DNA of 64,000 bases from assembly GCA_030704615.1 (NCBI GenBank), contig CM060732.1:31062001-31126000 (forward strand), in the 5' to 3' direction. Both the position numbers and the translations under genes were made by a program. Positions 1,354 through 45,400 of this stretch are shown here, piece after piece; position 1 is the stretch's first letter, and the number at the start of each line of letters is the position of its first letter. Below the pieces are notes generated by a model that did no database searches, had not been told where the DNA came from, and worked only from the letters and a program-made list of their open reading frames with translations. This stretch comes from Takakia lepidozioides (Eukaryota > Plantae > Bryophyta).

Positions 1354-4300
1354 TTATTTTCGCCGTTTTGTAAGATAACAGAGTTTGAGGCCCTTCACGC
1401 CCTGATTGCAGAACTGGCAAACCTTCAAACACCTAATCAATGCTTTCTGCCTCTGGGAACTTTCTTCCGGCTTCTTCCTTGATATTTGCTGACAAGTGAT
1501 TCTGAGCATGCTGAGTTTTGCCAAGAAGCGCAAAGTAGGTGAAGTGTGGGGTGGCAATGCAGAGATCCACGCATTTTGAAGATCTTGGATGAATTGTGGA
1601 TCCTTGAGGATGGATGGGTTCAATTTAAAGAAGCCCCTCCCCCGCACCCTGCAGCCCGGTGCATTGAGCAGCAATTGAATTGCGGCATGATCAAACCCTG
1701 GCTGAATCGGCTCAATTTGAGTTCTCTTGGACCAGCCAATAAGGGAGGTTGTGCAGTAAAACCTGTCCAGGCGGGCCTGGCATAAATCTGGTGGCACCCT
1801 GTTATTGGACCAGGTAAACTTAAGCTCCCCGATACTTGGAGCGGTTGCATCCAACAAACCAACAGTCAAACAAAGTGAGTCCCAGGCATCTGTTGCTGCT
1901 GGTGAGAGACCGTGAGCAGACTAACCAAGTCTATCTACTTCATGCTCTACCATATTAAAATCGCCCCGCACAATCCAGTGCTGGATCTGTGGATGCTGAA
2001 GCATTTTGTCCTTGATTTGATTCCAGAGAAGCACTCTTTCATCCTCCTCATTAGGGGCATAAATGTTCAACAGTCCCACACTGCCCAAAGATTGACCCAT
2101 GTTCAAAACCAGAAATTGGACTCGACCTTGGACCCAAACATCATTTGAAAGGATAGACTGAGCAAGAGGAGGGGACACCAAGATTGCGGTACCCCCTCTC
2201 GAATTAATGACAGAGGGGTTCCAGAAGACACTTGGTGTTGGCCAGAACCCTAAGGAGGTGATTTTATTAATATCTAGCTTATGTTCTTGTAAGAAAAGGA
2301 TGTTGGAGGCTTGCAAAAAAGTGGAGGCCCAAGTTCTGATCTTTGCCCTTTTTGGGGCAGATTGGTAACCTCTCACATTCGAGGAGGAGAGGGAGAGGCT
2401 CATGACGGAGATTGAGGTAGGCCCGTGGGGTAAGCACGAATTGATGGCCAAATTGGTTTGAAGAAGTACCTTGTCCGCCTATCTATTGGAGGCAGGGTGG
2501 AAACCCACTTGAAGCCCTCCGGTGGGGTAGACAATTCAGGAAGTTTCCAGGTAAACACTGTTCTGGATCTCTTTCTTTTGCATTTTGACCTAGCAAGGTA
2601 AATTGGTTTCCCCCTTCTCTGAAATGAGTAAGATTTTTGGCATTCAGATTGCAGGCCAGGGTGGAAGAGAGAGAGAGGAGGTGAGAGGGAGAGGAGGGGA
2701 GGTCGCTACTACCCCACCCTGGGAGTAGTCTCTGCGAAGAAGGGTGAGTATCTATCAACAGAGTCCAAACTCTCTTGTGCTCAGAAACATGAGGCGTAAA
2801 GAAAATGAGGGGGGAGCAAGCAAGAGAATCCAGCTTGCTTACCGCTGGTGGAGACTCGACTGTCTCCTCTGGCAGTAGGAGCGTAATTGTGGGGTCCAGT
2901 GGCGCATTTGAAGAGCCATTGACTTGGTTATAAATCCTCAGCACCAGCTCCCTGTTCGTGTTCAGCTCTGGGGTGGGGGTTGTGATCTTCGTCTTATGCA
3001 TTTCGTAGTGTTCATCCACGAATTTTTGACCGACCTCCATGATTTTTTTACTTCTCGCCCACTCATTGGGATCCTTGACCCTGCATGACAGTTAGGTCTT
3101 ACACACCCATAACCACGAGTTATGATTCCTTGTCGTGTCTACATCTATGTTGTAGATAACAGGTAGATAACAGGCATGATATGAACAATTGCCAAGTCAG
3201 CGTGAGAGACATCATGCTCAACCATGATTCCTATGTGCTGAATGTGAGAGAGCGAGAGGTTCAGTTTAGGAAAATATTCCTGAAGAATCTATTGAGTGAG
3301 GGCCAGAATGATTTTCTTCCTTGCCAACGCCAAACTCATTGGCAATTGCCTCCGAGACCCAAGCTGATTGAAATCCATCCTTTACGGCTGATAGAAAGAA
3401 TGTTGTGTAGTCATCGATGAATGCATACAGCAGGGGGGTGATGCAGATCGCCGCTTGGTCTCTGGCAAAGGAGGTGTCGGGCTCTCATCCTGGGAACGGT
3501 CTGGATTTGAACCAATGAAGTTCCAAAAAGGTGATGGCCAAGCTGTTGCTGTCTAACTGGAGCAGCTCTGACTGTGTGAAGGGGAAAGATGCCCACGCCT
3601 CCATAATTCTCACTGGGAAGAAAGCAGAGGGTCGATTTGGGTGCTTCCAAGTTGTGATTTCTACATTCTGCTTCCTTTTTTTGGTAGTGTACAACTCCTC
3701 AATGTCCATGACCATGGCCTGCCCATTTGAATCAAAATGGTTAAGGCCACCTTCCTGCTGGGGGTCATTCCTGGGGTGACTGGATCCAGACTCCTTGATT
3801 GTTCCTTCATGTTTCTTTGATCCCTTCAGAATCGGGCAATCTACCTTGACATGCCCTTCAGCGTGGCAGTGGAAGCATATGACTGATAGCACTTCTTCCT
3901 TAATCGCCACTACAATGTATGAGTCATCGATCGTGGGCAGCTTGATGGAAGAGCCTATTGTAGCATTGGCAGGCATTAGAACAACCAGTTTTGGCACTCC
4001 ATGATCTGAGTTGTAATCATACTGAATTGCTTCATTATCAACACTCAAGACTTGATCTTGCACTGGCTCATACACATTTATGGCACCTATGTATGTACTA
4101 AAGCTTGCTCCGATCTCGGGGAGCAAGGTGAGGTACGTTGGAGGCAGAAATGGGATGACTATCAGACGCGGTTTCCACATGATACCCTTCTTGTGCCCCC
4201 AGTCTTGGGTCCAGGGGAAGATAAAAACCCTCGCCGAGGATCGCTGAGTGTTGAAACGAACAGCCTTATTAGCATCTGTGGAGGAACCAAACAGGATGGC

Positions 4301-5476
4301 ATAGAAGCCCTTGCCCATGGACAAGCAGAAGTGTTGCGCGAGTCCTCCCTCTGCACCGAGATGTTCATCCACCCAACGTCTGATCCATGCACGGGGATGT
4401 AGTTTGCCAGCGAAGTAAAGCAAAATGCCTCTCTGCGATAACTTTTGTGCTTGTGCTATCATTTTATCCTTGTTGAGGGTGAGAACTGGCTGTTCTGATT
4501 CAGCTGACACTACTATGTCTTCCCAGAGCACTTCTGCAGGTGCTGGGGAGGGATGGGGGAGGACTGCTACGCTCGGACCTTTACCCAGAATGGAACCTCC
4601 CGTCAAATCCATAGAGGTGGTTTTCGTGATCCACGTTTGGTTTTTGCCCATGCTTGAGTGCGATGCACCGCCGCGCTTGCTTCATTTGGAGCTTTCCCCT
4701 ATGGAGGCCATGAGTGCCAGACAGAAGATCTCTGCTTAACAAGATAGCACGATACAAACAAGCTGAGAATGCAGGGGTAAACAGAGAAAGGATGGCGATA
4801 GGCCTGTAGAACTGAGAATTCACAGGGCCATGATAGACAAGTAAGCAAACAAGAGAGATTTGAGAAGCGGAACTGGCAAAAACTTCACCACAAGACATCG
4901 GTGGAATGCCAATGCATAGAGTTCACCCTTGGTTTTGGACACTTCCCTTTGAGGCATTGGAATGTGTGAAGGGAGTAAAGACTGTCAAGTCTCTTTGCCA
5001 AAGGAGCCATTTTGCCATCAATCATAAAGCGAGCTGTCTTGTTGAATCACCTGCGGAGTAAAGGAAGCCTTCATTTTCTGCCACACTTTTCTGCCAGGAG
5101 TTTGTTTGGCAGTTTTGTCTTGCCAGAGATGCACAATGCGCCGCATAGCCAAGGGCGGCTCATAAACGTAGCAGAGGAAAAGGCGGGAGAGTGGAGATGA
5201 GTAAACATGTGAGAGCTGGCATAAAGCGCAGCATTGAGAATTTGTGACGAATGCTTTAAGTTCAGCAGAGACACTTAGGTAAGAATGCATAAGTGAAATG
5301 TGGGGATGATGAAAGCAGTGAGTATGGCCCACTACCATCTGCTTCCATTGCATTACCCATTAGCAGGATCATAGGAGGAGGGGAGAGGGTGGGAGGAAGA
5401 GAGGCGAGAGGGGGTGGAAAATGGCTAAGTCCCCAGGCGCATTCATCGCAAACTGCAGAGCCCCGGGGCACCTGAC
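1354..5476 (-). mobile_element. L1-clade LINE, 5' half (5'UTR, ORF1, endonuclease part of ORF2), minus strand
   Basis: ORF1 3485-4651 has a DUF4283-like region and a zinc knuckle (CFHCHAEGHVKVDC). An APE endonuclease lies at 1921-2451 and 1354-1869 (SSNVRG, FLQEHK, LNIYAPN, GDFN, RLDRFY, DH). The 5' motif at ~5417-5460 matches 37427-37470 of the second copy. Confidence 0.9.
3485..4651 (-). pseudogene. LINE ORF1 (gag-like, CCHC zinc knuckle), interrupted by stops downstream
   Basis: Contains CX2CX4HX4C knuckle CFHCHAEGHVKVDC. Homologous to fragments at 36070-36700 (AQAQKL, GKGFYAILF / GRGFYAVLF, IPFLPPTY). Confidence 0.85.
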
Positions 5477-5589
5477 ATTCCGATACGTCGCAATTATATC
5501 TATTTTTCTTAAAAGAGATCCGGCATGGTATTACATATGTATCATATTTGGGTATATCATTTTAAAATAATGTGTATCATTTTGAAATT

Positions 5590-8500
5590 TGGGTTGTCAA
5601 AGCAGCTCAAAGGAGAAACGCCACATTGGTACCTGCGCTGAAAGATCCAACCGCAGGGCTGCTGGTTGACAACCCAAAATCCATGGCGGGGGTTGCTGCA
5701 AATTATTTCCAAAAGTTGTTTTTGTCAACAGCAGCCCTCACAGGAAAAAGACCAGGCTAGAGCTACACTCATACAACATATTCCATGCCTCGTATCACAA
5801 AGGGACAAAACAGCGCTGGCTTCTCCCCTTGCAGTGGAGGAGCTGGGCTTGGCAGTGCAGAATGGCGTCAATGAAATCACCTGGGTTAGATGGGCTCCCC
5901 ATAGAATTGTTCAAGGCATTGTGGGGCACAATTGGTGATGAATTCCTCCTAATGGCCAATGACATCCTGGAGAAAAAAATGATGCCTTCCTAGATCTCAG
6001 AAGGTCTCATTACTGTCATCTTTAAGAAAGGAGAAACGGATAACATGGCCAACTATAGACCGATCACTCTCCTAAACTCCACCTACAAGATAATAGCCAA
6101 GGTGCTGGCTCTCAGGTTGCAACCTCTCCTCCCCAACATCATCAGGCAGGATCAAACAAGATTCTTACAAGACATGATGATCCTTGATAATATATTGCTT
6201 GCTCATGAGGCCCTCCATAGAGCTGAGGTAAACAATCAACCACTAGCCTTCCTTATATTGGACTTCGAAAAGGCATTTGATTCTATCGATTGGACATTCT
6301 TATTGCAAGCTCTAGAAAAGACAGGGCTAGATGGGCCTTTCCTTACTTGGGTGCACATCCTACTTCACTCAGCCTCAAGTAGAGTGATGATCAACGGGGT
6401 CATCTCTGGTTCCTTCCCAATTTCAAGATCTGTGAAGCAAGGGTGCCCCTTGGCACCCTTCCTTTTTCTCATAGCTGCGGACTTGCTCGGACACCTTCTG
6501 GACCACAGGCCAGACATTGTAGGGTTGCACCTCCCAACTTACCGCCCCGAAATGCTCAAGATATCCATGTGCGCAAATGACACAACCATGCTGCTTGACA
6601 ACTCATCGCAGGGTAATATTGATAGAGCATTGCAAGCCCTTCACACTTTCTGCTTGGGAACATGCTTGAAGGTCAATTGGAACAAGTCAGTGGGAATTTT
6701 GTCATTACTGCAGAATGGAGGTCTTGCCACTCATTGCCAACCATGGGGTCATGACATTGGATTAAGATGGCTCAGGGAGGGTGAAAACCATATGCTGTTG
6801 GGCCACCAGATGGGCCTAAAACTCACGCTGCAAACCATCATGAAAGGGGTCATGCAAAAGCTCAAAGCAAAATTGGCATATTGGAGCTCTATTATGCAAT
6901 CCATCGTGGGAAGTGCCTTGGTGGCAAATCAAGTGTTGCTATCAACATCCTGGTTCTATTTTGCAGTCTGGGACCCAGGACCAGCGCTCGTCAAGGAAAT
7001 TAAAGCGCTCATACGTAACTTTATTTGGGGAGCCACCCCATCGACTCCAATCAGACGAGCCCCTGTCTCTTGGGACCAGCTGTGCCAAAAGAGAAGCCAG
7101 GGGGGATTGGGTATAATAGACCCCGGCTCGCAGATTAAGGCCTTATTGGCAAAGTGGGTGCCAAGAGCGATCAAGCACTACAACAGCCCATGGAGCAAGC
7201 TAGCTCAGCCATACCTCATGGGAGCTACACCCACATCCTCCCCCCTTTGGGTTTTCTCGCTGAGATGGATAGTGCAGGGCAGAAACGCAAATGTCAGGTT
7301 GGGCTCCAAACCTTGGCAATCAATCTGGAAAGCTTTGGCACACACTTAGAGGTAGTATTCTTTTCAGAAATGCCTACAATTTCATGGCAACGTGGAGGTG
7401 GCAGAACGTGCAGCAAGCTACCTTCTCAAGAGGTTTCCACAGGACGCTGCAACCTATGTGCTGCTATCGAATATCTATGCCTGCGGCTGGCAGATGGGAC
7501 GATACTGCAAAGGTCAGAAAGATGATGAGTGGCAAGGGCGTCCGAAAGGACCCAGGTTTCTCCTGCATTGACGTCAATAATCAGGTGCACACATTTGTTG
7601 TAGATGACAAATTGCATCCGCAAATAGAGGAAATTCTTGTGGAGCTAAAGAGATTGGCTGGGCAGATGAAGGAAGTTGGGTACATGCCTGATACTCGCTT
7701 TGTATTGCATGATGTGGAGGAGGAGCAAAAGGAATTGTCACTTTGCCACCACAGTGAGAAGCTGGCCATTGCTTTTGGGCTCATCAGCACATCCCATGGA
7801 ACGCCTCTCCTTGTCATCAAGAACAATGTGACCCTGTCAGGCTTCACCCCTTTCACTATAACATGGACTCTGATTCCTTGCTAAGGCAAACCCCCTCATG
7901 AGCCTTCTGGGAGGGACAGGGTTTTACGCACATTGCAGGCACCAGATCTGAGGGCCATTTCCTTCAAGAGGAGGACATAGTTGGAATAGTGGGGCGCAGA
8001 AGGTCATCAGCCTGGAACACAATCATCTCAGAGATCCCCCAGTTCATGCTCCCACTGCTAGATGAGACTAGGGACAATTGCACTCTCCCTGCTTGGATGA
8101 CATCTTATCAACGCAATCCTGTAACAGTGGCTCTGGAAATTCTTGACATGGAGGCCACATGATTGGGTTTCATATCGGACAGCGTTGGCAACCTCGCATA
8201 CTTCGGTGAAATAACATTGGACAAGTGGAACCTATACCATGTCAGGGTGCTAGATATGCTTGGAAATGCCAACCCCTTGCCGCCGCAGGGAATGGAAATT
8301 CAATGGGCTGTCTATCAATTGTTCACCCGGTTTCTCAAGTGTTCATTGGCAGATCTGCGATTTGATCCCTATGAGTGGAATTGGATGGACAAAAAGCATT
8401 CACCATTTTTCGCCTACAAGATCAAGCTGGGTTACTCTCTCATCAACCCTCCCCGTTCTTTTTTGGCAAGATGGTCTTCAAATGAAGCAATATGTAGTTC

Positions 8501-9626
8501 ACCCAGTCTAACTGGGCCAAAATTTGGAAGGACGTCTGGAGGAAAGACAGGGCAGAAAAGGTCTCAGGTTTCCTATGGAAATTGACCCATAGAATCCTGC
8601 CAGTCAAGCTAACCACAGACCAAGACAATCCTACCTAGTGCCCTCTCTGTCTGTCAGAACCAGAGTCCATTGAACATTGCCTGTTGTCTTGCAATTTCTC
8701 GGGTAGTATCTAGAGAAAGGTTTTGGGGTTCTACTCTCATTGGGTCACCTACCCCTCCCCTCCTCCTCAGTCTTTGTTGCTTCTCAACATGGTGCCAGGT
8801 CAGGCGCAAACTCTCTGTCCAGTGTGTGCCTCGCTCAGAGCTCATACTTTATGGAATATCTGGAAGTCAAGGTGTTCATATGTCTATGAGGGCAAGCCCC
8901 CCAAAGGCAGATCTGTCTTGTTCCACACTTTCATGATCTGTTGACTGAGGGGAGAAAAGCGTGGGATTCATTGTGTGTAGCTATTTCCAGATCTTCTGAA
9001 CAACGAGGAAGGAAGCTATTTCAAGATTTCATGCAGTCCTGGGGCAAAGACAACCTGCTCAACACCAGTCTTCCCGACATGATTGGAAAGACTCCATCCC
9101 CACTCAATGGGAGGTCCCCTGGTGATGGGGAGGAGGCTGATTACAACTGCGTCACAAGAGAGCTCGAGTTCCAAAGTTAAAAACTCAACTGAAGTTCTGA
9201 ATCTGAAGCACCAATCGCTCGCCTCTCGGTTTGTAGCATCTGTAGCTCTGAACTCGCAGGCTGGAGCATCCCCCTCTAGTGGGCCTTTCTGCCTCCCCTC
9301 TTCTCGGTTCTAAAGCAGCTTACATTGTTCTTAGTGGCTCAGTAGCTGCAGCAGGGTTTCCTCTGCTTTGTTTGTTCTTACGCCATGTTCTACCCCCCCT
9401 CTTAGCATTTCAATTCCCTTCAAACACTAAAAAAACCCCCTCTGATCTCTCCTTCGCCTCTATTAGCTGATTTGCTACAATCACGGGGAAGTTTCTCCCT
9501 AGTAAGTCCTCATGGCCTCTACATTGGTTATTTTTTCCACTGATATGACTCTACTTTTATTTAATTTGATTAAAAGGGCCCCTATTCCCCTTTTATTTAA
9601 AATAAAATATAAAAATATAAAAATAT
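5590..9626 (+). mobile_element. L1-clade LINE, 3' half (RT, zf-RVT, 3'UTR, A-rich tail), plus strand
   Basis: RT motifs NYRPITLLN, LDFEKAFDS, QGCPLAPFLF and degenerate CANDT (YADD) in 6045-7349. C-terminal CPLC..EPESIEHCLLSC at ~8640-8690. The 3'UTR at 9470-9600 matches the reverse complement of 33550-33670 and ends in an A-rich tail. Confidence 0.92.
7380..7824 (+). pseudogene. PPR protein E/E+/DYW-domain fragment embedded in LINE ORF2
   Basis: Reads FHGNVEVAERAASYLL..PQDAATYVLLSNIYA/AAGRWD..KVRKMM..KDPGFSCIDVNNQVHTFVVDD..HPQ..GYMPDTRFVLHDVEEEQKE..HSEKLAIAFGLIST..PL.VIKN. It has one frameshift near 7480 and stops before the CxxC and DYW end. Confidence 0.92.
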
Positions 9627-11256
9627 TCCGGCATAAGCTCCACAAAGAACGTACCGTAGGCAGGTACGGTAGCTTCTATTGTAAAATGTAAAAGAATATG
9701 CTTATCAAGTGATATCATTAGGACCCTTTTTTTTTTTTGGTTTTAGGACTCACTGTGCCAAAATACCTATAAAATATTCTTAGAATTTTAGATTTTATAT
9801 AATATGAATTTCTCACAGCATTTCATCGTCATTTCGCATAGCAAACTTGACTCATGGGTTCAAATCCAAGTCCCCTGTTCTCAAAAAAAAAAAAAATCCA
9901 GACATGAAAGCTTCATCAGTCATTAGGGACATTGCTAGTCTCGCCTCCCTGGGCGTTGCAAGCTTAAATTTATTAGTGTTCTGACAGCGATGGATGTGAG
10001 AACAGTAGCAGTGAGAGGAAACGAGGTGTGTCTGGACGAGAGCTGGCCTTGCTGCTCATCATATGCAGTCGGCCTTCGCAATCAAGCTCACCAAACACAG
10101 AAGCCCACCATACACAGACTGTACGCCTGTAAATCATTGTGAATTTATTTCTCTTCTACCTGTTTGCCGGTATATTCCCTGCTTGATGATTGCCTACAAC
10201 ACGTGCGATCTGGCCGGGTCCTGGATCCAGATTCTAGGTGTTTTCACGAGACTTTTGAAATGCTGGTGCAGTTGATACTTGATACTTCCCATACTTATCC
10301 CAAAATGAATCATATCATGCTCTTGAGAATGGAAGACTCCGCGGCATTGCAGTGATTGCAGCAGAGATATAATTAGCAATGCAGGTTGAGGGGACACGGG
10401 CGACTTTGTCCTACATCGCGATTTTAATTTTCGTCCCAAGACTGGTCAACCATTATGACTGCACAATCATCATTTCTTGCACTAACTTATACCTAGTTCC
10501 GGGATCTGTACAAAGTCTGATGAGAGACGAGACGAGACATAATTTGGCATCGAGTTCAAGTTCGCAGTAATCAGCCGGCGTTCCTTTTATACCTATAGTG
10601 TCATCCATCTGACAGACTTTCACATAAAATTATGTTTATTTCATGTCTCAGATTCGCTTTCTCAGTACTGTTATACCCAGCTTGTTCAGACGTTCAGACC
10701 ATCTGTACAAGTCATCTGGTAACAACTTAAGTTAGATCACTCCTGTGTCTCTCTGACACGGGAGCTCAATCAGGAGTCTTGTCTCTGTGGCCTTCATCAG
10801 GCTGCGCTTGAAGGCCTCTTCATCGCGTCGTCAGCTGCAAATTGCAATGCAACGACATCGCAAGCGAGGCAGCTGCGGATTTGGAGTTTTCGGTGGAGGA
10901 ATGCGACCGCGTAATAAATGTAAGAGTAAATAAAATCAGGATAGTAATACGAAGTGTGTGATTCTCAGAGTTACCTCTCTTGTACTGCTGGTGGAATCTG
11001 CCCGGGGGCCCGTAGCTTTTACAAGGTACAGGTAGAATACGCCGAGGGGAAGCGCGGGCAGGATCGGGGATATTGGACGCTGCCCGCGGGCAGAGGAAAG
11101 GCGGGTAAGGAGCGAAGAGTGACAGGGCAGGTCGTTATCGCGGGGCTGCCAGCGACGCCATCGCTGCGCACCTACGCGCACAAACGCACACAGCGAGGGC
11201 GTGCTTGCCATTCTGCAAAGTGGGGGCAAGCTCGTCCCGCGCCTGCCCTTCTTGCA

Positions 11257-14200
11257 ATGGAATCCCTCAGCCCCTCTCGGTTCAAGACAGTCTGTGTGTT
11301 TTGTGGCAGTAGCATTGGCAAGAAGAGCATTTTCGGCAGCGTTGCGTTGGAACTCGGCCTGGATCTGGTCAGTTCTGGATCTCTTTTGGGATGGGATGGG
11401 GTGGGATGTGATTATTTTTGGGTTTTGGTGACGGAGGTGAATCTTCGGAAATCATAAGTTTGGTATTCTTCAAAGGCTGGAAAACCCGAGGGAAAACCAC
11501 GAGTCTAAAAAGTGCAGTGAAGTTTCCCATTCCTGCATGATCTAGTGTCTGCGTACGCATGCCATTGCTGTTCTTGAAATTACAGCATTCATTGCAATCT
11601 ACAAGGCTTGCGCGGTCGATTGTCAAGCAGTGGTTGGAGTCGTAAACATCTTATGCCGGCCGGGAATTGATTTGAGGCTAAATGACAGCAATAATTTTGC
11701 TTCTGTCAGGTTGTGCTCCACAAGGGATTCAGGATCAAACGTTCCACTAGTATAGGTTAAAGATTGTGCAATCTAACAGTAAATTGGGTGGAATCAGACT
11801 GTGTTGTCCCGTGTAAATTGGTAGCAATATATCTGGAGGGTGCATGTGACTTTAACGTCGCGTACTTGTGAGGCTGGTTCGAATGTGCTGCATGCATGTG
11901 TTTACTTCTCCTTCGATTTGTGGAGCTCATACATAAATATGACATTTGAACAGTGTTTTTCCTCACCCCTCTTCCTGACATTGTGAAGATTCAACATCTC
12001 TCAGGGGCTTTCGCTATGAAAGCTTACGGTTCAGAGTCGATCTTTGGCCTATGTGGTCCATTCAGTTGGCAGCACCGTGGCCACCTGCTCGCCTGCAGGC
12101 TAATCAGGCTTCTACTATGGACTTGTATGTGCGATTCTAGAATCCCATGTGATTTTAGTGCATAGTGTGCGAGGATTTGGGGACTCAAATAAGTGGCGGG
12201 GTCTGGCTCATTCCGCGGATTCGGACGTGGCAGTTGATGTCATGTAGTGGACCATACCCGGGGCCATCTTTTCCCTTGTTTTGACTGCTTCACTTATTGC
12301 TGGAGGAGTAGGAAAGTCTGTCGACCGATGGCTAGTGCTTATATTACAACAGTGCGAAAAGGAACGTTCCCATTTGTGGAATCTTCCACCAGAATGGCCA
12401 GTCCTGCACGTTAGAATGCAGATCCAATGTGCTAGGATAGGAACAGTCTCAGCTGCTTTGTTTGCCACAACAACTATGATTTCAACTTTGTGAAGAGTTC
12501 ATCCAGGGCCGTTTTAATGTGGGAACAGCTGAAACGAAAGATTGATCTCGTTTACGGAGGGGGCAGTGTGGGGCTCATGGGCCAAGTCGCACGAACTGTG
12601 CACGCAGGTGGTGGTCATGTTACAGGGTACATGCTCTCTCTGCACTACCTATGCATATTCTTCTGACCTCTCCGTCGGTTTTGATTACTCAGAGTGTGCG
12701 TCTCACTGGGTCTTCTGTCAAAATCGTAGTCTAACCTGCATATTAACTGAGGGGTTTGCTTAAGGTTTGCATACGCCTGTGTTCTTGGTACGCACGGCGA
12801 TGCTCTTGAGTGTGGTGAGCTCTTATATTAGACCGCATGACTAAATTTTCTAGAAAGATCAGTAACAATTGGGCTCTTGCTTGCAATGAGTTTGTTTCAT
12901 TGTGTGTTCCAGCCGTGGAGATACGACGGACATGTGTTTTGATCACCTACTGACGGGGTAGACTGTATGATCCTTTTTCCAAGTGTGACATGGGACGTGG
13001 TTGTGGCTTGGTTGGATGGATTGCAGCGTGATTCCCAAGGCGCTCATGCCACAAGAGGTACGTTTTGAACAACAACATTTGTTGTTCTCAGACCAACACG
13101 TTCCCTGGCATTTTCTAAGTAACTGCACTCGCGTACGTATTCCTCTTTATGGTGGTGTCTCCTGTAGGGTCATATGAATTCGTTGGAGAAGTTTAGAGCA
13201 ATCCGAGAAAGTTTGACTCTGTATCCTAATCACCGGGTTGTCCAAGCAAGGTCGTGGAGGTGCTTACGGGTGCTTACAAGAGGAATTCTGACTTCAGCGC
13301 ATGGATAATCTCTTCAGCATGAGGAGCCATTATAAGGAGATGGCCAAGTGATTTGCTTCTTGTTTAGGTTAGCAGGGACTTGAAAAAGTGATTCTTAATT
13401 TATTTACAACTCGTGCATATGAACTTCAGATTTCTGGTCAGACAGTGGGAGATTTGGTTGCGGTGGCTGACATGCATCAACGGAAGGCTGAAATGGCTCG
13501 CCAAGCTGATGCTTTCATTGCACTCCCAGGTGTGCCCACATTCCGGTGCTTCATTTGGACTTCCGGCTTTGTGTTCGTAATGGTGTGCAGTAGGACTAGT
13601 CCTAAGATCGGTCGAAGGATCCATTATATATATGTATATATATATTCCTGAAGACTAATTTATCAGCAAGCAAGAAGTTTGCTTCAATTTGGCTTCGTTG
13701 ACGTTGGTTTGTATATACTGCAGGAGGATATGGCACACTGGAGGAGCTACTGGAGATGATAACCTGGTCACAGCTTGGTATCCATAACAAGCCGGTATGC
13801 TGTTTGCTCAAGCAGATTATGGAAACTTTTGAAGGTTTGAACCTGTGGCGGCATTTATACTGAGACCTATAAGTCACTGAATGATCTGCATTATGCACAA
13901 TTGATGGACAGTTTTGAAGATACTGAAAATACATGGATGCTTGGAGTTCACATCCACCTCACATGCTTAACTAAGCCGAATTCATGTTAGTTTCCACCGA
14001 CAAAACTCCATAACGGACCTCTCACGTTCGGAGGTATTTAAGCCGACCAGCTTAAAAGTCTGCAGTGCATTTTCCGTTCTCAGTGTTCAACTAAACGAGG
14101 TAGTAAGTACATACATATGTTTACATAATAATATTTTGAGCACTGTTTTTCCTGGTCCTCCATGGAACAGTTCATGACAGTACCGTTCTGACTGCACAGG

Positions 14201-19526: not shown

Positions 19527-20033
19527 AGAACGAGTTGCATATAGCAATAAAAGATTTAATAGTTTATCTTTATATTTAAATCAGTTTTTTAGTTATTTTT
19601 AGTATTCATCTTTTTAGTCATAATCTAAATTAGAATCATTAAAAGTTATATTACTGTACGAATTAAATCAACTCATATTTACTATTAAAAATAATAAAAA
19701 TAATATTCAAAATTTAACTTTTATACAACCACTCACTTGTAACTACACAATGTTCTTAAACATGTAACAATGAAGTATATTATATAAATATATATATTCA
19801 AAAATCTATCACACAACATTCAGTCTCACTTTTATTTTCTAAATATCTGAAGATCAGACATGTAACAATCCGATTCTAAGTATATCTATTTTTTCTTTCT
19901 ACTGTAATTAATTAAGAGAGTTGGACTATAGGCAACATTGTCAAAAACTGTGAAAGAGGCTAAGCGAGATCATGTGAGACTTGAAAACTCTAAAAGCAAA
20001 GAATATTTTCTGAGGGAAATAGAAAAAATATAA

Positions 20034-21911
20034 ACTACTATAATAAATGTATCAACTTTGGTTATTATATTTATGAATCACATATACTATTTATTGGTAT
20101 GTACCGACAAAATTGGTAGGTTGTCATCATTTATTATAATTAAAACAAAACTTTATTTTTGATAAACGTTTATACATCCATTTGTAATGCACCGACATCC
20201 TTTTTTGAAATAAACCTTTACATGTTAGTACCTATGTTAGAAATAGAAAAATAATAAGATATGTATTATTATTTATAACTGCCCTTAGGACTCCTTAGGA
20301 CTGCCCTAAGGAGTCCTAAGAGGGGGGAAAATGGAAATATATAAATTATTATTTATAATTATCTTTAAGACACCTAAGAAGAGGGAAAATGCAAATATAT
20401 ACATGATTATTTATAATTACCCTTAGGACTTCTTAGGACGGTCCTAAGGAGTCCTAAGAGGGGAAAAATGAAAATATATAGATTATTATCTATAATTACT
20501 TTTAAGACACCTAAGAGGAGGAAAAATGAAAATATATACATGATTATTTATAATTACCCTTAGGACTTCTTAGGACGGTCCTAAGGAGTCCTAAGAGGGG
20601 AAAAATGGAAATATATAAATTATTATTTATAATTACTTTTAAGACACCTAGAGGAGGAAAAATGCAAATATATACATGATTATTTATAATTACCCTTAGG
20701 ACTTCTTAAGACAATCCTAAGGAGTCCTAAGAGGAAAAAACTGGAAAGATATAATTATTTGCCCTTAAGACCCGTTTAGACAGCCTAAGGGGTTATAAGA
20801 AGGGGAGAATGGAAACATATAAATTATTATCTATAATTACCATTAGTAAGAAGGAAATAATTGAAAGATGTAAATTATTATTTATAATTGCCCTTAAGAC
20901 TCCTTAGGGCGGCCCTAAGCAGTCCTAAGAGGGAAAAATGGAAATATATAAGTTATAAGAAAATAAAAACATATATATTATTATTTATAATTACCCTTAG
21001 GACTTTAGGATAGTCTAAGGAGTCCTAAGAGGAGAAAAATGGAAAGACATAAATAATTGCCCTTAAGATCCATTTCGGCAACCTAAGGAGTTATAAGAGG
21101 AGGAAAATGGAAATATATAATTATTATCTATAATTGCCCTTAGGACTCCTTAGGACTGCCCTAAAGAGTCATAAGAGGGGGAAACGGAAATATATAAATT
21201 ATTATTTATAATTACCCTTAGGACTCCTTAGGGCAGTCCTAAGGAGTCCTAAAAGAGGGGAAAATAAAAACATATAAATTATGATTTATAATTACCCTTA
21301 GGACTTCTTAGGACAGTCCTAAGGAGTCCTAAGAGGAGAAAAATGGAAAGACATAAATAATTGCCTTAAGACCCGTTTCGGCAACCTAAGGGGTTATAAG
21401 AGGAGGAAAATAGAAACATATAAATTATTATCTATAATTGCCTTTAGGACTCCTTAGGGCCGCCCTAAAGAGTCCTAAGAAGGGGAAAATTGAAAGATGT
21501 AAATTATTATTTATAATTTCCCTTAGGACTCCTTAGGGCGCCCCAGAGTCCTAAGAGTGGGAAAATAAAATGATATAAATTATTATTTATATTAGCCTCT
21601 CAAGATGAGTGAAAATGAAAAGATGTATTTTGTTTTTTATAATTGCCCTTAGGACTCCTTAGGGATTAGGGCGGCCCTAAGGAGTCCTAAGGGAAATAAA
21701 AATAAACAAAGTACTATAATAAATGTATCAACTTTGATCATTATATTTAAAAATCATATGTACTATTTATTGGTATGTACCGACAAAATTTGTAGGTGAC
21801 ACCATTTATTACAATTAAAACAAGATTTTGTCCTCGATAAACGTTCATATAGCTATTTGTAATGTACCGACATCTATTTTTAAATAAACCTTCATGAGAG
21901 TTAGTACCTAT
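20034..21911 (+). repeat. ~200-bp diverged direct repeats bracketing the minisatellite
   Basis: ~20034-20235 and ~21711-21911 share ACTATAATAAATGTATCAACTTTG...GGTATGTACCGACAAAATT...GATAAACGTT...GTTAGTACCTAT. Confidence 0.8.
20265..21700. repeat. Degenerate minisatellite of ~60-80 bp units with an internal inverted repeat
   Basis: Recurrent unit ATAATT(G/A)CCCTTAGGACTCCTTAGG-n5-CCTAAGGAGTCCTAAGAGGGGAAAATGGAAATATATAAATTATTATTT. Long units alternate with short hairpin-less units in the left part. Confidence 0.9.
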
Positions 21912-22069
21912 TTAAAAAATGTGTGGGATAAGGTTAATAAATAACAACTTTTCATTCTGTTTCATCAAATTATTTTTATTTTCATTCATTCGTTTTAGAC
22001 TGTACCTCATTTTTTTCCCTATAAGTATAGAAAACGAGGATTATTTTCTTCTCTTTCTACCTCAAGTTG

Positions 22070-23000
22070 TTTGCAGACAATAGAACTGTTTCTTAGTTTT
22101 GCTCTTTTACCTTTGTTTCTCTGTTTCTTCTTTGTTTCTGTTGTTTGTTTATGTTTCTCTGTTCTTTCGATTATTTGACAATGTTTTTTAGTTTTTCTCA
22201 GTAGTTTCATTTGTCTTTGTTCCTCAGTTTTGGTAATCTGTTTATGTTTCTTTGAAACCTCTATAGAACGAGGATCATTTCCCTCACTTTCTTCTGCAAG
22301 CATGCTTTTTGTATAGAATAGAATTATTCTGCTCCTTTTGTTTCGTTTGTGTTTTTCTTCTTTGTTTCTGTTGTTTGTTTATGTTTCTTTGTTCTTTAGA
22401 ACTATCTCTTAGTTCTTCTCAGTAGCATTCATTTGTTTTTTCCTTTCATTTTTTGTTCTTTGTTTATGTTTTTTTTTATCTCTGTTCTTTGTATTTCTGT
22501 GTGAGTTGTTCAATGGAATATAACTTTCTATTCGTTATCTTTCTTTCGTTTTGTTTTCTTTCCTCTTTGTTTGTGTTTCTTCTTTGCTTTTGTTGTTACT
22601 TTGTTCTTTCGGTTCTGTGGCAAAATGAACTGTCCCCTAGTTCTAATTCCGAGTAGCCTTCATTTGTTTTTTTCCTTCGCTTTTTGTTCTTTGTTTATGT
22701 TTTTTTCCGATCTCTATTTTTTGTATTTCTGTGTGAGTTGTACAACAAAATAGAACTTTCCGTTTTCTCTTTCGTTTTATTTCTTTCCTCTTCGTTTGTC
22801 TTTCTTCTTTGCTTTTATTGTTTTTTTATGTTGCTTTGTTCTTTCGGTTATGTGGCAAAATAGAATTATCTCCTAATTCTTATGAATAGCCTTCATTTGT
22901 TTTCTTTATTCACTTTCTGTCTTTGTTTATATTTCTTTTTTATCTCTGTTCTTTGTATTTCTGTGTGAGTTGCTCAACGGAATAGAACTTTCCCTTCTTT
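22070..23000. repeat. T/C-rich degenerate tandem repeat (~240-bp higher-order unit)
   Basis: Repeated blocks such as TGTATTTCTGTGTGAGTTG..CAA..AATAGAACTTTC (~22490, ~22720, ~22950) and TTTCTTCTTTGTTTCTGTTGTTTGTTTATGTTTC (~22120, ~22350). Confidence 0.8.
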
Positions 23001-24120
23001 CTTTCTCTACCATTTTTGACTTCGTTCTTTTTCTTTTTCTTTTTCGTTTCTTCTAACTTATCAGACACACTATCAGATAACTAACAATATCTTATATTTC
23101 CAAGAAATCATCAAAATTCATCACACTGTGATTATGTCACTTGAATGTTTACATCATAATCTATAGTACATATGATATTCAAGCATGATATCAATATAGT
23201 ATATACAACTGAGAGATTATAAATATTTAACTATAATCATAATTATATATATTATAATATAATATAAATAAGTATATAAAAACGAATATTGTTTTACATT
23301 AAGTAAATAAATTTAATAATAAATAGATGTATCTTAAAATCTAGCTATAACCTAACGACATCACCACATAAATCAACTATCATTCTATCCATCAACCAGT
23401 CAATTATCATTCCATCCATTATCATAAATCAATCATTATCAGTTACAATCATGTGTTATTTTACTTATTACATAATTTTTATTCATATCAGTTTATATCT
23501 TATCATTACATTTTCATATTTTAAATTTCAAATAGTTATATTATTTCTATAAATAAACATACTAAAATATTTATTTAAGAGAACTAAAATTATTATATAT
23601 ATAAAACATAATTATATATATAATATATTATAAGAATAAATATATTATCAATTTATATCATGCTTTCAATGTCAGATTCATCATTCCAATTTAAATCTAA
23701 TCAATCAAGTTATCGATTATATTACATCTCAAAAACTTCAAATATTTCAAATATACTGTTTATATTAACAAATTGATTTAAGAAATAAAATTTAAAAATG
23801 GATATATAATAATATAATATGTATTAAATACTTAAAATATAAATCAATATATAATATAATGTATAATGTATATTACTATATTATATCATATTTTCAACCT
23901 CAGATTTCATCATTTCAATAAATTCAAAATCCACTGCATTTAATCAAATTGTTTATCATATTACATTCCAAAAACTCCAATTTATTTAACCCGTATGGTT
24001 AATCTTAAATGCCTTTCTGCCATAATTTTGTATGCTATAATGGATAGCTATAAGGGTTCAAATCCCTATACAAAAATGAAGTTATTATAAATACCAAAGC
24101 TGCGACAAGGAATATCGCAT

Positions 24121-27507: not shown

Positions 27508-30500
27508 CTAAACCACTCCCCTAACTTTTCCTCCTACTTTGCGCTTAAGAGATCCTACAAGAAAAGAAAGCTCTGCCTTCCGCTTCCGATCTGTGTTTCC
27601 CATCTGAACCCCATCTTCAACATTTGCAACTTTTCTATTCTGTAACCTTTGAACCTTGTCTCCTCCATCTAGCCTAGTCTCCAAACCAGCATCAGTTTGT
27701 TGCAGGCGGCGTCGCTGAACCTCAGCCAGTATTTTAAGCTGTGCAGCAGATTTTCGAAACCGGGGGTCTGTGGGATCAATGGCGAAATGATGATTTGAAA
27801 ACAGAGATGCGAACCGTGGGTCGTCCAGATTGGCTGTACCCATTTTATCCTCTTCTTCTTCGTCTCTGGTTTTACTTCGAATACCCTTCTTTTCCCCTCT
27901 ATCCTTTTTTCTGCTTTTGTCTTTTGTATGCTTTAGGTTGAAGCCTCGAAGGCCTGCTTGAAGGCCATGGTCATCCATGAGAAGTAACTCCAGTTCCGCT
28001 CTGTTTCCCTTCTCTTCCTTCTTTTTCTCAATTTCCTCTCTCCTTGCATGCTCCCCATCAGTAACCCTCTTACCAGTCCCCAGAAGGCCATCTTCAGCTC
28101 TCTGTTTGTGCACTCGCCGCCCCTCTTTCACTCCTTCCCCTGGAACTTCACCATCCGTAGCAAAGAAGGGGTCATCAAACCCATCTTTATCATCAGTGAC
28201 GAAAGGATCTGAATCCAAATGGACCCTGTAAGAAATATCTGTCTCATCGTCAGACTCAGGATCCGAGCTATGGTTACCACGGCTCCCCTTCTTTCTCTGT
28301 ACCTTTCTCTCCTTCTTCTTCCTCAAGTAAGCCTCCCAAACTGTCTCATCCCCACGTTGCTTTGCTTCCTTCTTCTGCAATAACCGCTCACTGAGGTCGT
28401 CCAACCCTGTGTGGAACGTGACCTCCATATCCACATCACCCTTCCCTGACTGCTTACTCACAGGAGAATCATCCGTGGTGTCTCCAACAAGCAAAGCTCG
28501 ATATTTCTCCCTCACTTTCGTGGGTCTGCCTTCCCCTGGTTGTTGGTCGCCAGTAACGCCCCCTACCTCTGATCCCCCAGGCTTTACCCGGTCTGCATCA
28601 TCATCCACCTCTTCTTCCTCTTCCTCAGATTCCGATGCGAGGTAGGACCTGAAAGGTGGGAAAACGTCATGAACATGGACTACTCAAAAGCCAAAAAGAA
28701 AATTTTAAGATCAACTTGGTACTAACCTGAAATCCATTTCATTTAACTGGTCAGCATTGAACTTCCGCCGCAGAGCCGTCACACGGTGGGGTTCATCGTC
28801 GTCCCACGTCAGCTTCACATTGCTGTGTTGTAGAGCACGTGTCTGAAACTCCGGAGCCCTGTACTCCTCTGGGACATCCTTTGCTACATCCCGGGGAGCC
28901 CTCTCAAACTTCATATGATGGGGAATGAAACGTAAGTCGAGGGTATTCGATGTTCGCTCAAACTCCATTCCATCACACTGTTGGTAAAGATAATTGGAAG
29001 TTTCCCTTGAATCACACTCCACAACCGCATAGTAGTAGCGTAGCTTGTTCTTCTCATACAGCCGCAGCTTTTCCATGTCAATCTCATCAGTTTCCTCTTC
29101 CTCCTCTTCCTTCTCAAAAATGGCCCTAGGTCCATGAGCCTAAACATTTCATGACAACAAAAATCAGGACTGCGATCTTAAACCCTGAACCCTAGGTTGT
29201 CCGCTTAATATTTGTTATTACTCAAAAGGAATGTTACTTCCTCTCCATCAGTTCCCTAACTGGTTCCTCTATGTCTGTGGAGGGAGAGATGTTATATTCT
29301 TGAACATAGGCCAATTCACTAAAAATGAAGTAGGGGATTTGTAACCCCAACTGACCCAGGCCACTCAACCATTTCAGCATACTCCATTGGGGCAAACATT
29401 GCAACTTTCAAGCACACTGCTCCATCATTCAGTATTCCAAAGTAAGCAGATCAGGAAGCTGAATTACATGAATATATGATTACCTCCTCAACTTCCATTT
29501 GCTGCAAACCAAACTCTGACGGGTACACCGCCACAGACTCCACACGTCCAACCTTGGGGATGAAAGACTGCATTAGCACCAATAGATCCACAGCCAATAT
29601 GTGCTCCCAGTCCATATTCATTATGGCCAGCCTTCGCGTTTCCTGGTTTGTGGTAGGCACCTTCTCCTCTTCGTCCGCCACTTTCTCCTCCCTGTCACTT
29701 TCCCCTTCTGAAGACGAAGAAGATGTTTCCGCCTCACTATCAGAGCCCCACTCTGAAATTTCTTCTGAGGAGGAGGGCTCCACGCCATCCGCCATCGACA
29801 AGCCGCTCTTCCTCCCTCGTGTAGCGGATGTCAAACCTTCTTCACCACTCTCACCTTTCTTAGCACCCCCGTCGTCTGATGTCCAGGCTGATGATGACTC
29901 TGTGCCCTGTGCCTTATGACTCTTTCTGGCAGCCATCGCCCTTGCATCGACTTCCGAATTTTCTTTACTTCTGTCTGGAGTCAACACTCCCACCTCTTGC
30001 TCGTTGTCGTCTTCATCCAGAACCAGCTCCTGCTCGCTCTCTTCGTCGTCCTCTTCAAACTGTGTGTGTTTTCTTCTTCTTTTCTTCGTTGTGGAATCCA
30101 TTTTCTCTTCAGTTTCCTGCTTCTTCTCGCCTTTAATAAAAACACGTTGCGACTTTTTCTTCTCTGCCTGACTTGCCTCGCGCAGTTTCTTACCTGTCTT
30201 ATCCTTCACCCTGTCGAGCTTCTTCGACTCCACGGGTTCCTCCCTCTCAACCACCTCATCATCCTCTCCCTCTCCATTTCTCCTCCCCGCGGAGTCATCA
30301 TCAACTTTGTAGTAACGACGTAACAGTTGGTTCTCCTTCTTCTTCTTCACTCTCCCTCTCTTATCCACTCCAAGAGGATCCTGGAAATTCCTGTCAGAAA
30401 ATATATGAGAGAAGCGGGAATCAATGGAAACCTTGGCCTTACCCTTCGGCATCCTCTGAAAGCGCGGGTCCGAGTGCAAACGACTAAACCTTGGATCGGC

Positions 30501-30536
30501 AATAGCAGCAGGCCGAGGTCCAGCCTCCATCTTCAT
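27508..30536 (-). CDS. ESF1: Pre-rRNA-processing protein ESF1, 3 exons
   Basis: Exons 30536-29484 (DPRFSRLHSDPRF, TRRLAIMNMDWEHI, VAVYPSEFG), 29139-28727 (LRYYYAVVECDS, DLRFIP, LTWD) and 28648-27508 (NUC153-like DDPRFASLFSNHHFAIDPTDPRF). GT-AG introns are in phase. The start codon is uncertain. Confidence 0.92.
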
Positions 30537-30773
30537 TGTCTTGGCCGTGCCTTCCTCCAAGGTCTCTCTTGTTTGCCTACTCGCTCTCTCTTCTCTCCCT
30601 TTTCTCTCTTCTCCCTCGTCCGTCCGCACTCGTCGACGATAAAGCTGGACGAACAACGCTTGTGAGATTCGTCCGACACGATCTTACTTACACTCTTCTG
30701 CTTCTCCCCTCATCTCTCTCTCTGTCTGTCTCGCGACTGTGTAATCAGTATTCAGGTACTTCAGGGCATCGTA

Positions 30774-32090
30774 ATGGGGCTTGGAGCAGGGTTGCAAGGA
30801 GTGGTGGCACCTAACAGGATTGGGCTCTGTTGTGAACCGGCTTCTCACTCTTGCAGCCCCAAAACTGTAGCTGTGGGGTGCTGTTTGGCCGAGAGAAAGA
30901 TGCATGCATTTGTTGGTATTTCCTCTGTCAAGCTGCAGTCGGTGTTAATCCCCCAGGTCTCTTTTAGTGTGTCGTTGCACAAGAAGAAGAAGATGGGCAG
31001 GGTCATGACACCCCAGAGAGGGTCTTTCAGCATCAGGAGCTTCGCGTCGGACCCAGATCAGCTCAGAGGTGCCCGAGAAGATATCAAGACTCTGCTCAAG
31101 GAAAAACATTGTCACCCAATTTTGATCCGGCTGGCCTGGCATGATGCAGGCACCTACGACAAGAACGTTTCGGAGTTCCCCAGAAGGGGTGGGGCAAATG
31201 GGAGCCTGCGGTACTCGATAGAACTTGACCATGCCGCGAATGCAGGTCTAATCGGTGCTCTTAAGCTGCTGGAGCCAGTGAAAGAGAAGTTTCCCAACGT
31301 CAGCTATGCAGATCTTTTCCAGCTTGCAAGCGCCACTGCCATTGAGGATGCCGGGGGCCCGAAGATTCCAATGAAATACGGACGTGTTGATACATCTGGA
31401 CCTGAAGACTGTGTCAAGGAGGGTAATCTACCTGACGCCGGTCCTCCAAGTCCTGCATCCCATCTTCGCAATGTGTTCTATCGAATGGGCTTAGGTGACA
31501 AGGAGATTGTGGCTTTGTCAGGTGCGCACACAGTGGGACGGTCGCGGCCTGAGCGTAGTGGGTGGGGGAAACCTGTCACAAAGTATACGAAAGACGGGCC
31601 TGGATTGCCTGGAGGTAGTTCATGGACACCGGAATGGCTCAAGTTTGATAACTCATACTTCAGAGAGATCAAGGAGAAGAAAGACGAGGATTTACTGGTT
31701 CTACCCACTGACGCCGTCGTCTTCGATGACCCAGACTTCAGAACGTATGCAGAGAAGTATGCCCTAGACGAGGCATCCTTTTTCAAGGACTACGCCGAAG
31801 CCCATGCCAAGCTGAGCGAGCTGGGCTCTAGTTTTGATCCTCCTGAGGGAATCTACATCGACGAGACCGAGAAAGCAGCACAACCTCAGAAATTTGTTGC
31901 AGCGAAGTATTCTACTGAAAGTGATAACAGGAAAGAGCTTTCTGACACAATGAAAGCCAAAATCCGGGCCGAATACCTGGCTATTGGGGGGAGCCCTGAC
32001 AAGCCCCTTCCAACAAACTATTACCTTAACATCATCCTTGCAATCGCCGTTCTTGCTGTGTTAGCGTCGGTCTTTGGTGGCATCTCATAG
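30774..32090 (+). CDS. APX: Chloroplast thylakoid-type L-ascorbate peroxidase, intronless
   Basis: Single 438-aa ORF with a transit-peptide-like N-terminus, [10 protein letters not shown] (distal His), ALSGAHTVG (proximal His), plastid-type [13 protein letters not shown], and a C-terminal [29 protein letters not shown] membrane anchor. Confidence 0.95.
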
Positions 32091-42400: not shown

Positions 42401-45400
42401 GCCTCTGACAATGGTGTGCCAAGGTTCCCACCCATGAATGTACGCACTCCAGCATGCTTCAGCAACTGCTCCCATTCATACATCAGACAATCACCAAATT
42501 TGGTACATCATTAGTGCATGTAACACCATCAAATCCTAGTGGAAAGTGCTGCAGAAGAAGCACAATGCATGCAGGCCCCTCTGCAGAGCCAGAATTCCCA
42601 AGATCACTTGATCATATCAAACCAAGACACAAGTTCCTGCAAGAACCTTGCCAACCATTTACTGTTGAGAAGACATAGGATGTCAGCAACCTGTGTTTGG
42701 TTACTCAGAAAGGCCATCAGTTCGACCATCTGCCCTTCCTATGAATCACATGCCCAGCCTAAAAAGAACTGCAATGGCTAAATGATAATGCATGATTTTA
42801 CCAAAACCATAGGTATCCGCAAAGTTGTAAGCTATGTATGGGGGCTGACACTATGAAAAACTTAGACAAGTTTCCAAAGGCAATCAATGTGAACTAAATT
42901 GGGACAGCGTTGGCTTGCAGTACAGTGAGCCACAAATTTCACATCTGTAAATTGGTTTGGTAACAAACTGATGAGGGTAGGTGCATTGCTACAGAGTGTG
43001 GCCTAGCATTTGTGGTGGAGAGGTCGCCTACCAAAACCCGTTAAGAGGGACATATGGGCAGCACCTGGCCAGTGAATGTGGTAACGGTGGATTTGCCGTT
43101 GGTGCCTGTCACAGCAGCAATCTTCACATGTTTGGGCAATGCAGCTGCTGCAAAGCCCAATTCTGATATAGCAGGGACTCCCTGCATACTTAAAACAAGA
43201 TCTTCCATCATGATATGATAGAACCAAGCTCAGAACTCAAATGCAGACAACTTGCAAGCAGGGAGCAGCCTGAAATTCCCAGGCCTCAGCTTCCTCTGGG
43301 CTCTCTCCATAGTGGAATCACGGAATCCACTCTATGATGACATGGATACCAAACATTTTCTGATGCAGGAGACTGCTGAAAAAAAGGCCCTTTGTTAATG
43401 CATAAAATGGATGTATCACTGTGCCTATTTTTATTAAGTTTGAGAAGATTGAAAGTTGTGAATCTCCTTGCATAATTCTGGGTGATTACTTTCGAGTCAA
43501 ATTCATGCTAGACTCTAGCTCAATCTGCAGAACTCTATGTATTCAGGTACGGTCCACTATTGTAGAAAGCTTTCAGTGACTGGTAAAGATAAGTTGGGCC
43601 AGGAAACATAGCTCCACATACGTGAGCTACAGCCTGGTACATATTGAATCTGAGCTTTTGGAGCCTTTTGATGAACAAGCAAGAAGTCAAGGACACTGGT
43701 AAGGCCTTTCCTGTGCTGGACAGCTGATTCTCCCCACAAGAAGGCTGCCCACCTGTGGAGCATAATCAGGGAAGAGGGGAACCATTTGCCTACTCTGGCC
43801 GCAAGTCCGGACCCCTATTGCAAGTAAAAACCTCATATGTCTTCCTTTCCCTCGGTCTCTCTCTCCCTTCTCTCTCCATGCCAGCCCTTATGTTTGCGGA
43901 TGACTCCGCAGGCATAGGGGAGACTCCAACCAATCTCCAGGAGTTGATTGATTGCGCGAAGAGATACTTTGATCTTTGGGGGCTAGAGGCTAATGTCAGC
44001 AAATGTGCAGTGGTAGCATTCAATGGCAGAGGAGAGGGAGGAAGTGATCTTAAGTGGCAGTGGGGTAGCCAAGAGATCCCGGTCCTCCCTTCCTACACTT
44101 ACCTGGGCGTTGAGTTTTCCTCCAATTGTAATTGGGATGCACATATCCGGAAAGTTGTTCAAACTGGCAAGGGCAAAGCTCTGGGGCTCACTAAATTTTT
44201 CCACTGCAGAGGGGTCAACTCTGAGGTTAAGAAAACCATGCTTTGTCGCATTATTAGACCTGCCTTGGAGTACGGATCTGCAATGTGGGTTGATAGCTCC
44301 AACCAAGCTAAGTCTCTAGAATCCATTCAAGTGGGGGTGCTTAAGGAGTGTATGTCGGCATGCTCCAAAACAGCCAATGTGGCTGTTCGGGGTGAGTTTG
44401 GCATTCCGTCCTTAAGCTCCTGACGAGATGAATTCAAGGTCAGATGGTGGGGTCAGCTGCAACATATGTCCAACACCAGATATCCTAAGTTAATCGACTC
44501 GGGAAACAGGACCGCCCTGTCAAACAGGCTAAGTCCTGGCAGAAGAGAGTAGAAGAGATTCTCAAGGACCTGGACCTGGAACCGCAAGTCTTGACCCTGC
44601 TGCATGAGATTGTCTGATGAAAATGAAGTTAGGCAGAAAACTTCCCTGAACTTGTTTCCAGTCAGTGACATGGGGGAGGACTTGGATGACCTCAAGGGTC
44701 TACCCACTCTCGGCACTAGACTGAAATTTAAACTCAGGGCAGGAAGCCTACCTTTGAACAGCAAACAGAAGCAGAGAGGAAAGGGAGAGTGCAATTGCCC
44801 GTTGTGTGGGCAATCTGAAGACAGTACTCATTTTCTGATACACTGTCCAGGGTTCTCTCACCAAAGAGACGCTCTCTTCAAATCTATCAAGGGAATTGTG
44901 CCTGTACCTCTGTTTACCAACTTTGAAAGTCTCGAGGCTGAGCCAAAAGCCCAGGCCCTCCTGAGGCCTAGTTATTGGACAAATCACACACAGCAGATTT
45001 ATGCTTGTGTGAAGGGATTTCTAGAGGATATCTGGAAAACCCGGATTAATTCTATATATGAAGGTAAGTCTTACTACCAACGTCAGCCCCTGACAGAGGT
45101 AGGTTCTGTCCCTTTTGTTTCCGCTCAAACTGGGCGCGGGGTCAATGGCCACAAGGCTACGGCAAACAACGTCTTATGAGAACAATCTCTCTCCCTTCTG
45201 TTGAGTTTATCTAACTGATACCTAGGCGATACCCCCACTAAGAAGCCCTGTAACCTCAACAAACTGGCGCAAGCCTACTCCCATACTACCCTCCCCTCAG
45301 ACATCCTCAAACTCCTCATCGCCTTATTTCAGTTGACTCACTCATATTACTCCAGCCCACTAACCTGCCCCATGGAGCTCTCCACATACAGCAGCCCACA

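Follow-up and report, generated by a model that had tools for sequence, protein, structure and literature searches.

We detected a 445-nt piece of PPR-DYW coding sequence (7380-7824, + strand) inside the ORF2 of an L1-type LINE of Takakia lepidozioides. The piece contains the E and E+ motifs, followed by the N-terminal half of the DYW deaminase. The window is the whole stretch of DNA that was analyzed (64,000 nt of contig CM060732.1, assembly GCA_030704615.1), and all positions refer to it (Table 1). The PPR piece is an insertion into the LINE ORF2, and it is a gene fragment rather than a functional PPR-DYW gene. The best reading, to which we give a probability of about one half, is that DNA or cDNA was captured or copied at a break in the already integrated LINE; the repair mechanism and its timing after the LINE integration are what we infer from the anatomy of the locus. 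The insert is most likely a one-off scrap from break repair and no working cargo.

Table 1. Features of the PPR insert, its host LINE and the second LINE copy (window positions)
Feature	Position	Strand	Description
LINE copy 1, whole	~5570-9626	+	5'-truncated L1-type; host of the PPR piece
LINE copy 1, left part	5570-7379	+	ORF2 with RT, without endonuclease domain
RT ORF	6045-7349	+	RVT_1, E=6e-27 (Pfam)
PPR fragment, first part	7380-7482	+	frame 3; end of last PLS repeat and first half of E1, ..HGNVEVAERAASYLLKRFPQDAATYVLLSNIYA
PPR fragment, second part	7483-7824	+	frame 1; remaining E1, then E2/E+, then N-terminal DYW half
DYW deaminase N-terminal half	7678-7824	+	ends ..VIKN, before LRVCGDCH
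HSE (deaminase HxE motif, zinc and catalytic)	7750-7758	+	from sequence and alignment
LINE copy 1, right part	7825-9626	+	C-terminal ORF2 region, 3' UTR, A-rich tail
Degenerate A-rich tail of LINE copy 1	~9596-9626	+	
Candidate TSD of whole LINE copy 1, TCCGGCAT	5519-5526 and 9627-9634	+	8-mer, weak
LINE copy 2	35690-33503	-	same family; 5'-truncated, 18-A tail, without PPR piece
Empty site in LINE copy 2	~35367-35358	-	counterpart of the PPR insertion point

Identity and extent of the PPR-DYW fragment

The Pfam E_motif match is divided between the two reading segments of the fragment. Profile positions 1-33 of 63 were found at 7383-7481 (E=1.9e-6) and positions 35-62 in 7483-7824, i.e., after the 1-nt frameshift produced by one extra base near 7482; the E_motif score was 28.5 bits against a cutoff of 27.3. 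The second segment additionally matched Eplus_motif (profile positions 1-18, 22 bits, slightly below its cutoff of 24) and, with E=1e-14, DYW_deaminase (1-49 of its 93 profile positions). Both segments are free of stop codons.

The alignment with six public PPR-DYW proteins extends from ..HGNVEVAERAA.. to ..GTPLLVIKN. PPR homology begins at ~7380, with the final residues preceding E1, and upstream of the E motifs the LINE ORF2 is found in place of a PLS-type PPR repeat array. The alignment ends exactly where the relatives go on with LRVCGDCH, and tblastn with PPR proteins placed the end of the homology at exactly 7824. This bears out the statement of an earlier note on this DNA that the fragment has HSE and is cut before CxxC. 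HSE is the sole catalytic element kept. The fragment shares with PPR-DYW organelle RNA-editing factors the E1, E2/E+ and DYW N-terminal motifs, including HxE; unlike these factors, it is frameshifted and does not have PPR repeats, the CxxC zinc ligands or the C-terminal half of the deaminase.

A 197-aa ORF (7291-7884) spans both joins only because 34 codons at the start of the PPR piece, as well as the LINE flank to its right, are read in the wrong frames. Its use as query in a word-based protein search produced 232 matches, and all 120 listed were PPR E/DYW proteins or fragments. Among the matches listed, identity to the PPR fragment was 60-75%, the closest public relative having 75% over the PPR part (E=9e-50). 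At each of the two joins, the frames of the PPR piece and of ORF2 differ by 2 nt. The earlier note had correctly placed a PPR E/E+/DYW fragment inside the LINE ORF2 in the orientation of the LINE: the Pfam matches, the alignment and the RVT_1 flank agree, and both elements are on the + strand. It had also raised the possibility of a LINE subfamily carrying deaminase cargo. This cargo reading fails on function because the domain is a half domain without CxxC, the RNA-binding PPR repeats are missing, and the piece is both frameshifted and in the wrong frame relative to ORF2.

The PPR piece also contains a 16-nt inverted repeat (7595-7610 / 7811-7826, 14 of 16 positions complementary), for which ~0.06 pairs per 700 nt are expected by chance. 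The second arm terminates exactly at the 3' junction. A fold-back at the join is one possible source of the repeat, coincidence the other.

Host LINE and the insertion site

LINE copy 1 is an old, broken, non-functional retrotransposon, with ~8-9 disabling mutations in 3.4 kb by hand count. Public ORF2 relatives align to 5859-7340. The relatives of its RT ORF have at most 45% identity, and all 120 listed are plain RT or ORF2 proteins; Exo_endo_phos and zf-RVT are among their domains, and one is named LINE-1 ORF2. No endonuclease-coding sequence was found upstream of the start of copy 1, the 5' boundary at ~5570 being approximate.

The 8-mer TCCGGCAT is the candidate target site duplication (TSD) of the whole LINE, and its second occurrence stands directly after the A-rich tail. 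The chance that windows of 180 and 200 nt share some 8-mer is about one in two to three; because a shared 8-mer is this common, it is only the post-tail position that supports TCCGGCAT as a TSD. Some 45-65 AT-rich nt of unclear origin separate the upstream TCCGGCAT from the first clear LINE homology.

LINE copy 2 is colinear with copy 1 on both sides of the insert, with ~69-76% identity; blastn aligned the copy 1 segments 7855-7938, 8262-9207 and 9460-9621 to it. In copy 1, ..PWQSIWKA is followed by a 1-nt frameshift (near 7334), by WHTLRGSILFRNAY and by the PPR piece, to the right of which stands CDPVRLHPFHYNMDS..AFWEGQGFTHI. Copy 2 reads through the same region in one frame, as ..PWQSIWRAWQSIRGNLTQRMSTSRQECLR*PLFANYNMDS..AFWEGQGFTHI. 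Five public ORF2 relatives (P0122, P0125, P0127, P0141, and P0146) are likewise uninterrupted at the site, some of them ungapped and others with small gaps, and have in common the pattern W..I..AW...R..L, ~10 residues, E.LRQP.F.N. As copy 2 and the five relatives are contiguous at the site, the PPR piece is an insertion, as had been claimed from copy 2.

The anatomy to the right of the insert differs from the earlier description, in which ~30 bp of filler followed the PPR piece. The 35 nt at 7825-7859 align to 32 nt of copy 2 with a score of 19.5, compared with 2.0 +/- 4.4 for 2000 shuffled sequences, none of which reached 19.5, and they retain the family residues R..P.F..N. This segment is therefore diverged LINE sequence. 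Copy 2 had been said to have about 10 codons between the LINE landmarks; we found ~13, and most of them survive in copy 1.

The arrangement is extremely unlikely to be an assembly chimera. Both joins lie inside one colinear LINE copy, and a mis-join would not usually lead back to that element at the position where it had left it; we found no point in support of it.

The segment around the insertion site is 79 nt in copy 1 and 84 nt in copy 2, and the LINE picks up ~0-10 nt from where the PPR piece interrupted it. One alignment has an ~8-nt gap at the insertion point. The LINE has a native repeat at this site (two occurrences of GAATGTC, in copy 2 with a spacing of 23 nt), and an alternative alignment via this repeat gives ~11 nt (AATG..) on each side of the insert. 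Because of the repeat, an 8-nt loss and an ~11-nt imperfect duplication are indistinguishable by alignment. The joins are placed to ~10 nt at best, the comparator copy 2 being just 69% identical.

The ~11-nt flanks bear on a possible retroposition in trans, in which target-primed reverse transcription, primed internally on the A-rich ..AAGAACAA, would have placed part of a PPR transcript in the existing LINE DNA, as in a processed pseudogene. The flanks in that one alignment would be TSD-like, and the 3' junction is A-rich. For hornworts, Takakia, and lycophytes, a 2026 survey traces the PPR expansion mainly to retroposition-associated dispersed duplication; retroposition is held largely responsible for PPR expansion in early land plants (PMC13386178). 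We rejected the flanks as a TSD by hand comparison: the two halves agree with each other at 5-6 of 11 positions, whereas each agrees with copy 2 at 8 of 11. The insert is also without poly(A) and without a 3' UTR, and it stops in the middle of the DYW domain. We consider retroposition in trans improbable.

Nor were terminal inverted repeats (TIRs) or a clean TSD bracketing the insert found at the joins in a search of 7250-7950. PPR coding homology spans the insert from the first to the last codon, and there is therefore no space for transposon termini. These results speak against the PPR piece as the remnant of cargo from another transposon (Pack-TIR, CACTA or Helitron2) whose ends were deleted later: TIRs, hairpin ends and TSD are all missing, PPR coding homology extends to both joins, and the loss of both termini with the LINE flanks intact would take two precise deletions. 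The relevant passages of a 2026 review on how plant transposons capture genes describe LTR retrotransposons and DNA transposons and give no LINE case (PMC13317346). Gene-capturing elements of plants (Bs1, Pack-MULE, Pack-CACTA, and Helitrons) share with the present locus a non-functional host gene fragment inside a mobile element; unlike them, LINE copy 1 gives no sign of ever having moved with the PPR fragment. Such transposon cargo is a doubtful source of the insert, about as improbable as retroposition in trans.

An Rfam scan of 5000-10000 found no structured RNA.

The window also contains other retroelement relics and host genes. Just upstream of copy 1, on the opposite strand, a 388-aa open ORF (3485-4651, -) has a weak zf-CCHC match (E=0.005) as its sole Pfam match; it looks gag-like, or like a domesticated retroelement protein. 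Further diverged RT remnants were detected at 43755-44423 (+) and ~57627-57848 (+) by a weak RVT_1 match and by tblastn of the LINE relatives, and the window therefore has at least four RT-bearing relics. Two long exon-like ORFs at 27508-30656 (-) with ESF1 RRM and NUC153 domains represent a host gene homologous to the ribosome-biogenesis gene ESF1, adjoined by another host gene, an uninterrupted 438-aa haem peroxidase ORF (30774-32090, +). The ORF at 10954-11457 (+) contains a stretch that is presumably similar to the beginning of a LOG-type cytokinin-activating enzyme. The GC content falls to 25-30% at 20001-24000, compared with 43-51% in the remaining window.

Proposed break repair and possible RNA-level origin of the insert

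We suggest that a chromosomal break arose within the already integrated, non-functional LINE copy, and that its repair brought in 445 nt from the interior of a PPR-DYW editing-factor gene or of the corresponding cDNA. A loose fragment may have been captured by end-joining. The other route would be synthesis-dependent or replicative copying, with an ectopic PPR locus as the template and a subsequent return to the broken end. In either case the outcome would be an inert scrap, namely half a deaminase without the RNA-reading PPR repeats, frameshifted and mismatched in frame to ORF2.

Several properties of the locus are consistent with such repair. LINE sequence is colinear to the left and right of the insert, and copy 2 and the five relatives have the interrupted segment in one piece. 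The LINE resumes ~0-10 nt from where it stopped, so that the 84-nt segment of copy 2 corresponds to 79 nt in copy 1. The insert is PPR homology from end to end, with no TIR, clean TSD, poly(A), or 3' UTR. Filler insertion at a double-strand break classically leaves such a footprint, a single break point from which a few bases are lost. Filler DNA and templated insertions at repaired double-strand breaks have been reviewed for plants (PMC8871565). The locus shares with plant filler insertions a point insertion of a few hundred bp of unrelated genomic or cDNA sequence, at most a few target bases lost, and the absence of transposon ends and of poly(A). The footprint at 7380-7824, known from the insert and the target only, is compatible with this class, short of proof.

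Three points weigh on the other side. The sense orientation of the insert would have just a 50% probability in break repair, whereas it is obligatory for an RT origin. Alignment does not separate an ~11-nt imperfect duplication at the site from the 8-nt loss. The insert does not look clearly younger than its host, with one disabling mutation in 445 nt compared with the ~8-9 in 3.4 kb of LINE. Relative dating by disabling mutations was rejected as uninformative, the density being ~1 per 400-450 nt in insert and LINE alike.

Alternatively, the chimera could have been made during LINE retrotransposition. The RT would have jumped from the LINE RNA to a PPR transcript and back, or cleaved LINE RNA and a PPR mRNA fragment would have been copied end to end or ligated, and the chimeric cDNA would then have integrated. 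The orientation of the insert is the one that this model predicts, a single candidate TSD (TCCGGCAT) flanks the whole composite, and insert and LINE are similarly decayed. A precedent is the tripartite pseudogene of Magnaporthe, for which double template jumps of a LINE RT were proposed (PMC2104539), and LINE-1/mRNA chimeras have been catalogued in mammals (bioRxiv 10.1101/2025.02.02.635956).

Template switching would have to take place twice inside the PPR mRNA and to land back on the LINE RNA at most ~10 nt from the point of departure. Such a return is improbable for undirected switching across several kb of template; cleaved LINE RNA with its halves held in one particle could account for it. 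In most of the mammalian chimeras, a truncated LINE has the foreign RNA joined to its 5' end, i.e., by one switch (bioRxiv 10.1101/2025.02.02.635956). Template-switch chimeras (U6/L1, mRNA/L1, and Magnaporthe) share with the present locus a sense-oriented foreign cellular sequence joined to a LINE and one candidate TSD around the entire composite. Unlike in most of the mammalian chimeras, the foreign piece is internal here; one LINE flanks it to the left and right and has lost next to nothing of its sequence. No second chimera in the window and no RT+DYW protein among the listed public matches were found, which also counts against this origin.

The earlier note had proposed RT template switching or break repair onto a PPR transcript. 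The capture itself is real; the anatomy favors break repair, and the RNA-level origin is less favored. We regard the latter as unlikely, and as somewhat less so than retroposition in trans or transposon cargo.

Search for further copies and significance

By blastn and tblastn, the 64-kb window contains no second chimeric copy, no other PPR sequence and no PPR donor. RT and DYW were not found together in one protein in any of the 240 listed public matches (120 for each of the two queries, the 7291-7884 ORF and the RT ORF); this is a weak negative, the searches having covered proteins of 0.55-1.75 times the query length. The low best identities (75% and 45%) also show that the source genome and its near relatives are absent from the protein collection.

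Exact junction searches of public metagenome contigs detected no homologous chimeric copy. The 24-mer at the 5' junction had no exact match in them. The 24-mer at the 3' junction had a single one, within a 29-nt identity to Ga0310697_10013002 (L001:5612-5640 vs window 7808-7836) that encodes the same peptide, LVIKNNVTL. The match sits inside a 1045-aa prokaryote-type surface-protein ORF, and the remaining contig is dissimilar. The identity is probably a coincidence, though long for chance.

The proposal of the earlier note that LINEs provide a direct route for shuffling editing domains thus gained no support from the absence of a second chimera in the window and of RT+DYW proteins among the 240 listed matches. 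A chimera made at the RNA level that went on to retrotranspose, leaving additional copies that share its junctions, is very unlikely in our view. If it were true, the LINEs of Takakia lepidozioides would spread E/DYW-domain pieces genome-wide, and the spread pieces could give rise to novel combinations of domains, or to small RNAs directed at PPR genes. If several LINE copies shared the junctions, they would represent a rarely described internal LINE chimera and a retroelement route for DYW-domain shuffling.

The type of event is already known, and the PPR insert in the LINE is a further instance of it. As found, the insert is of little consequence, a further dead gene fragment within a dead transposon. 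It is a data point on the scattering of a hugely expanded editing-factor family, probably via break repair and not via the transposon machinery.
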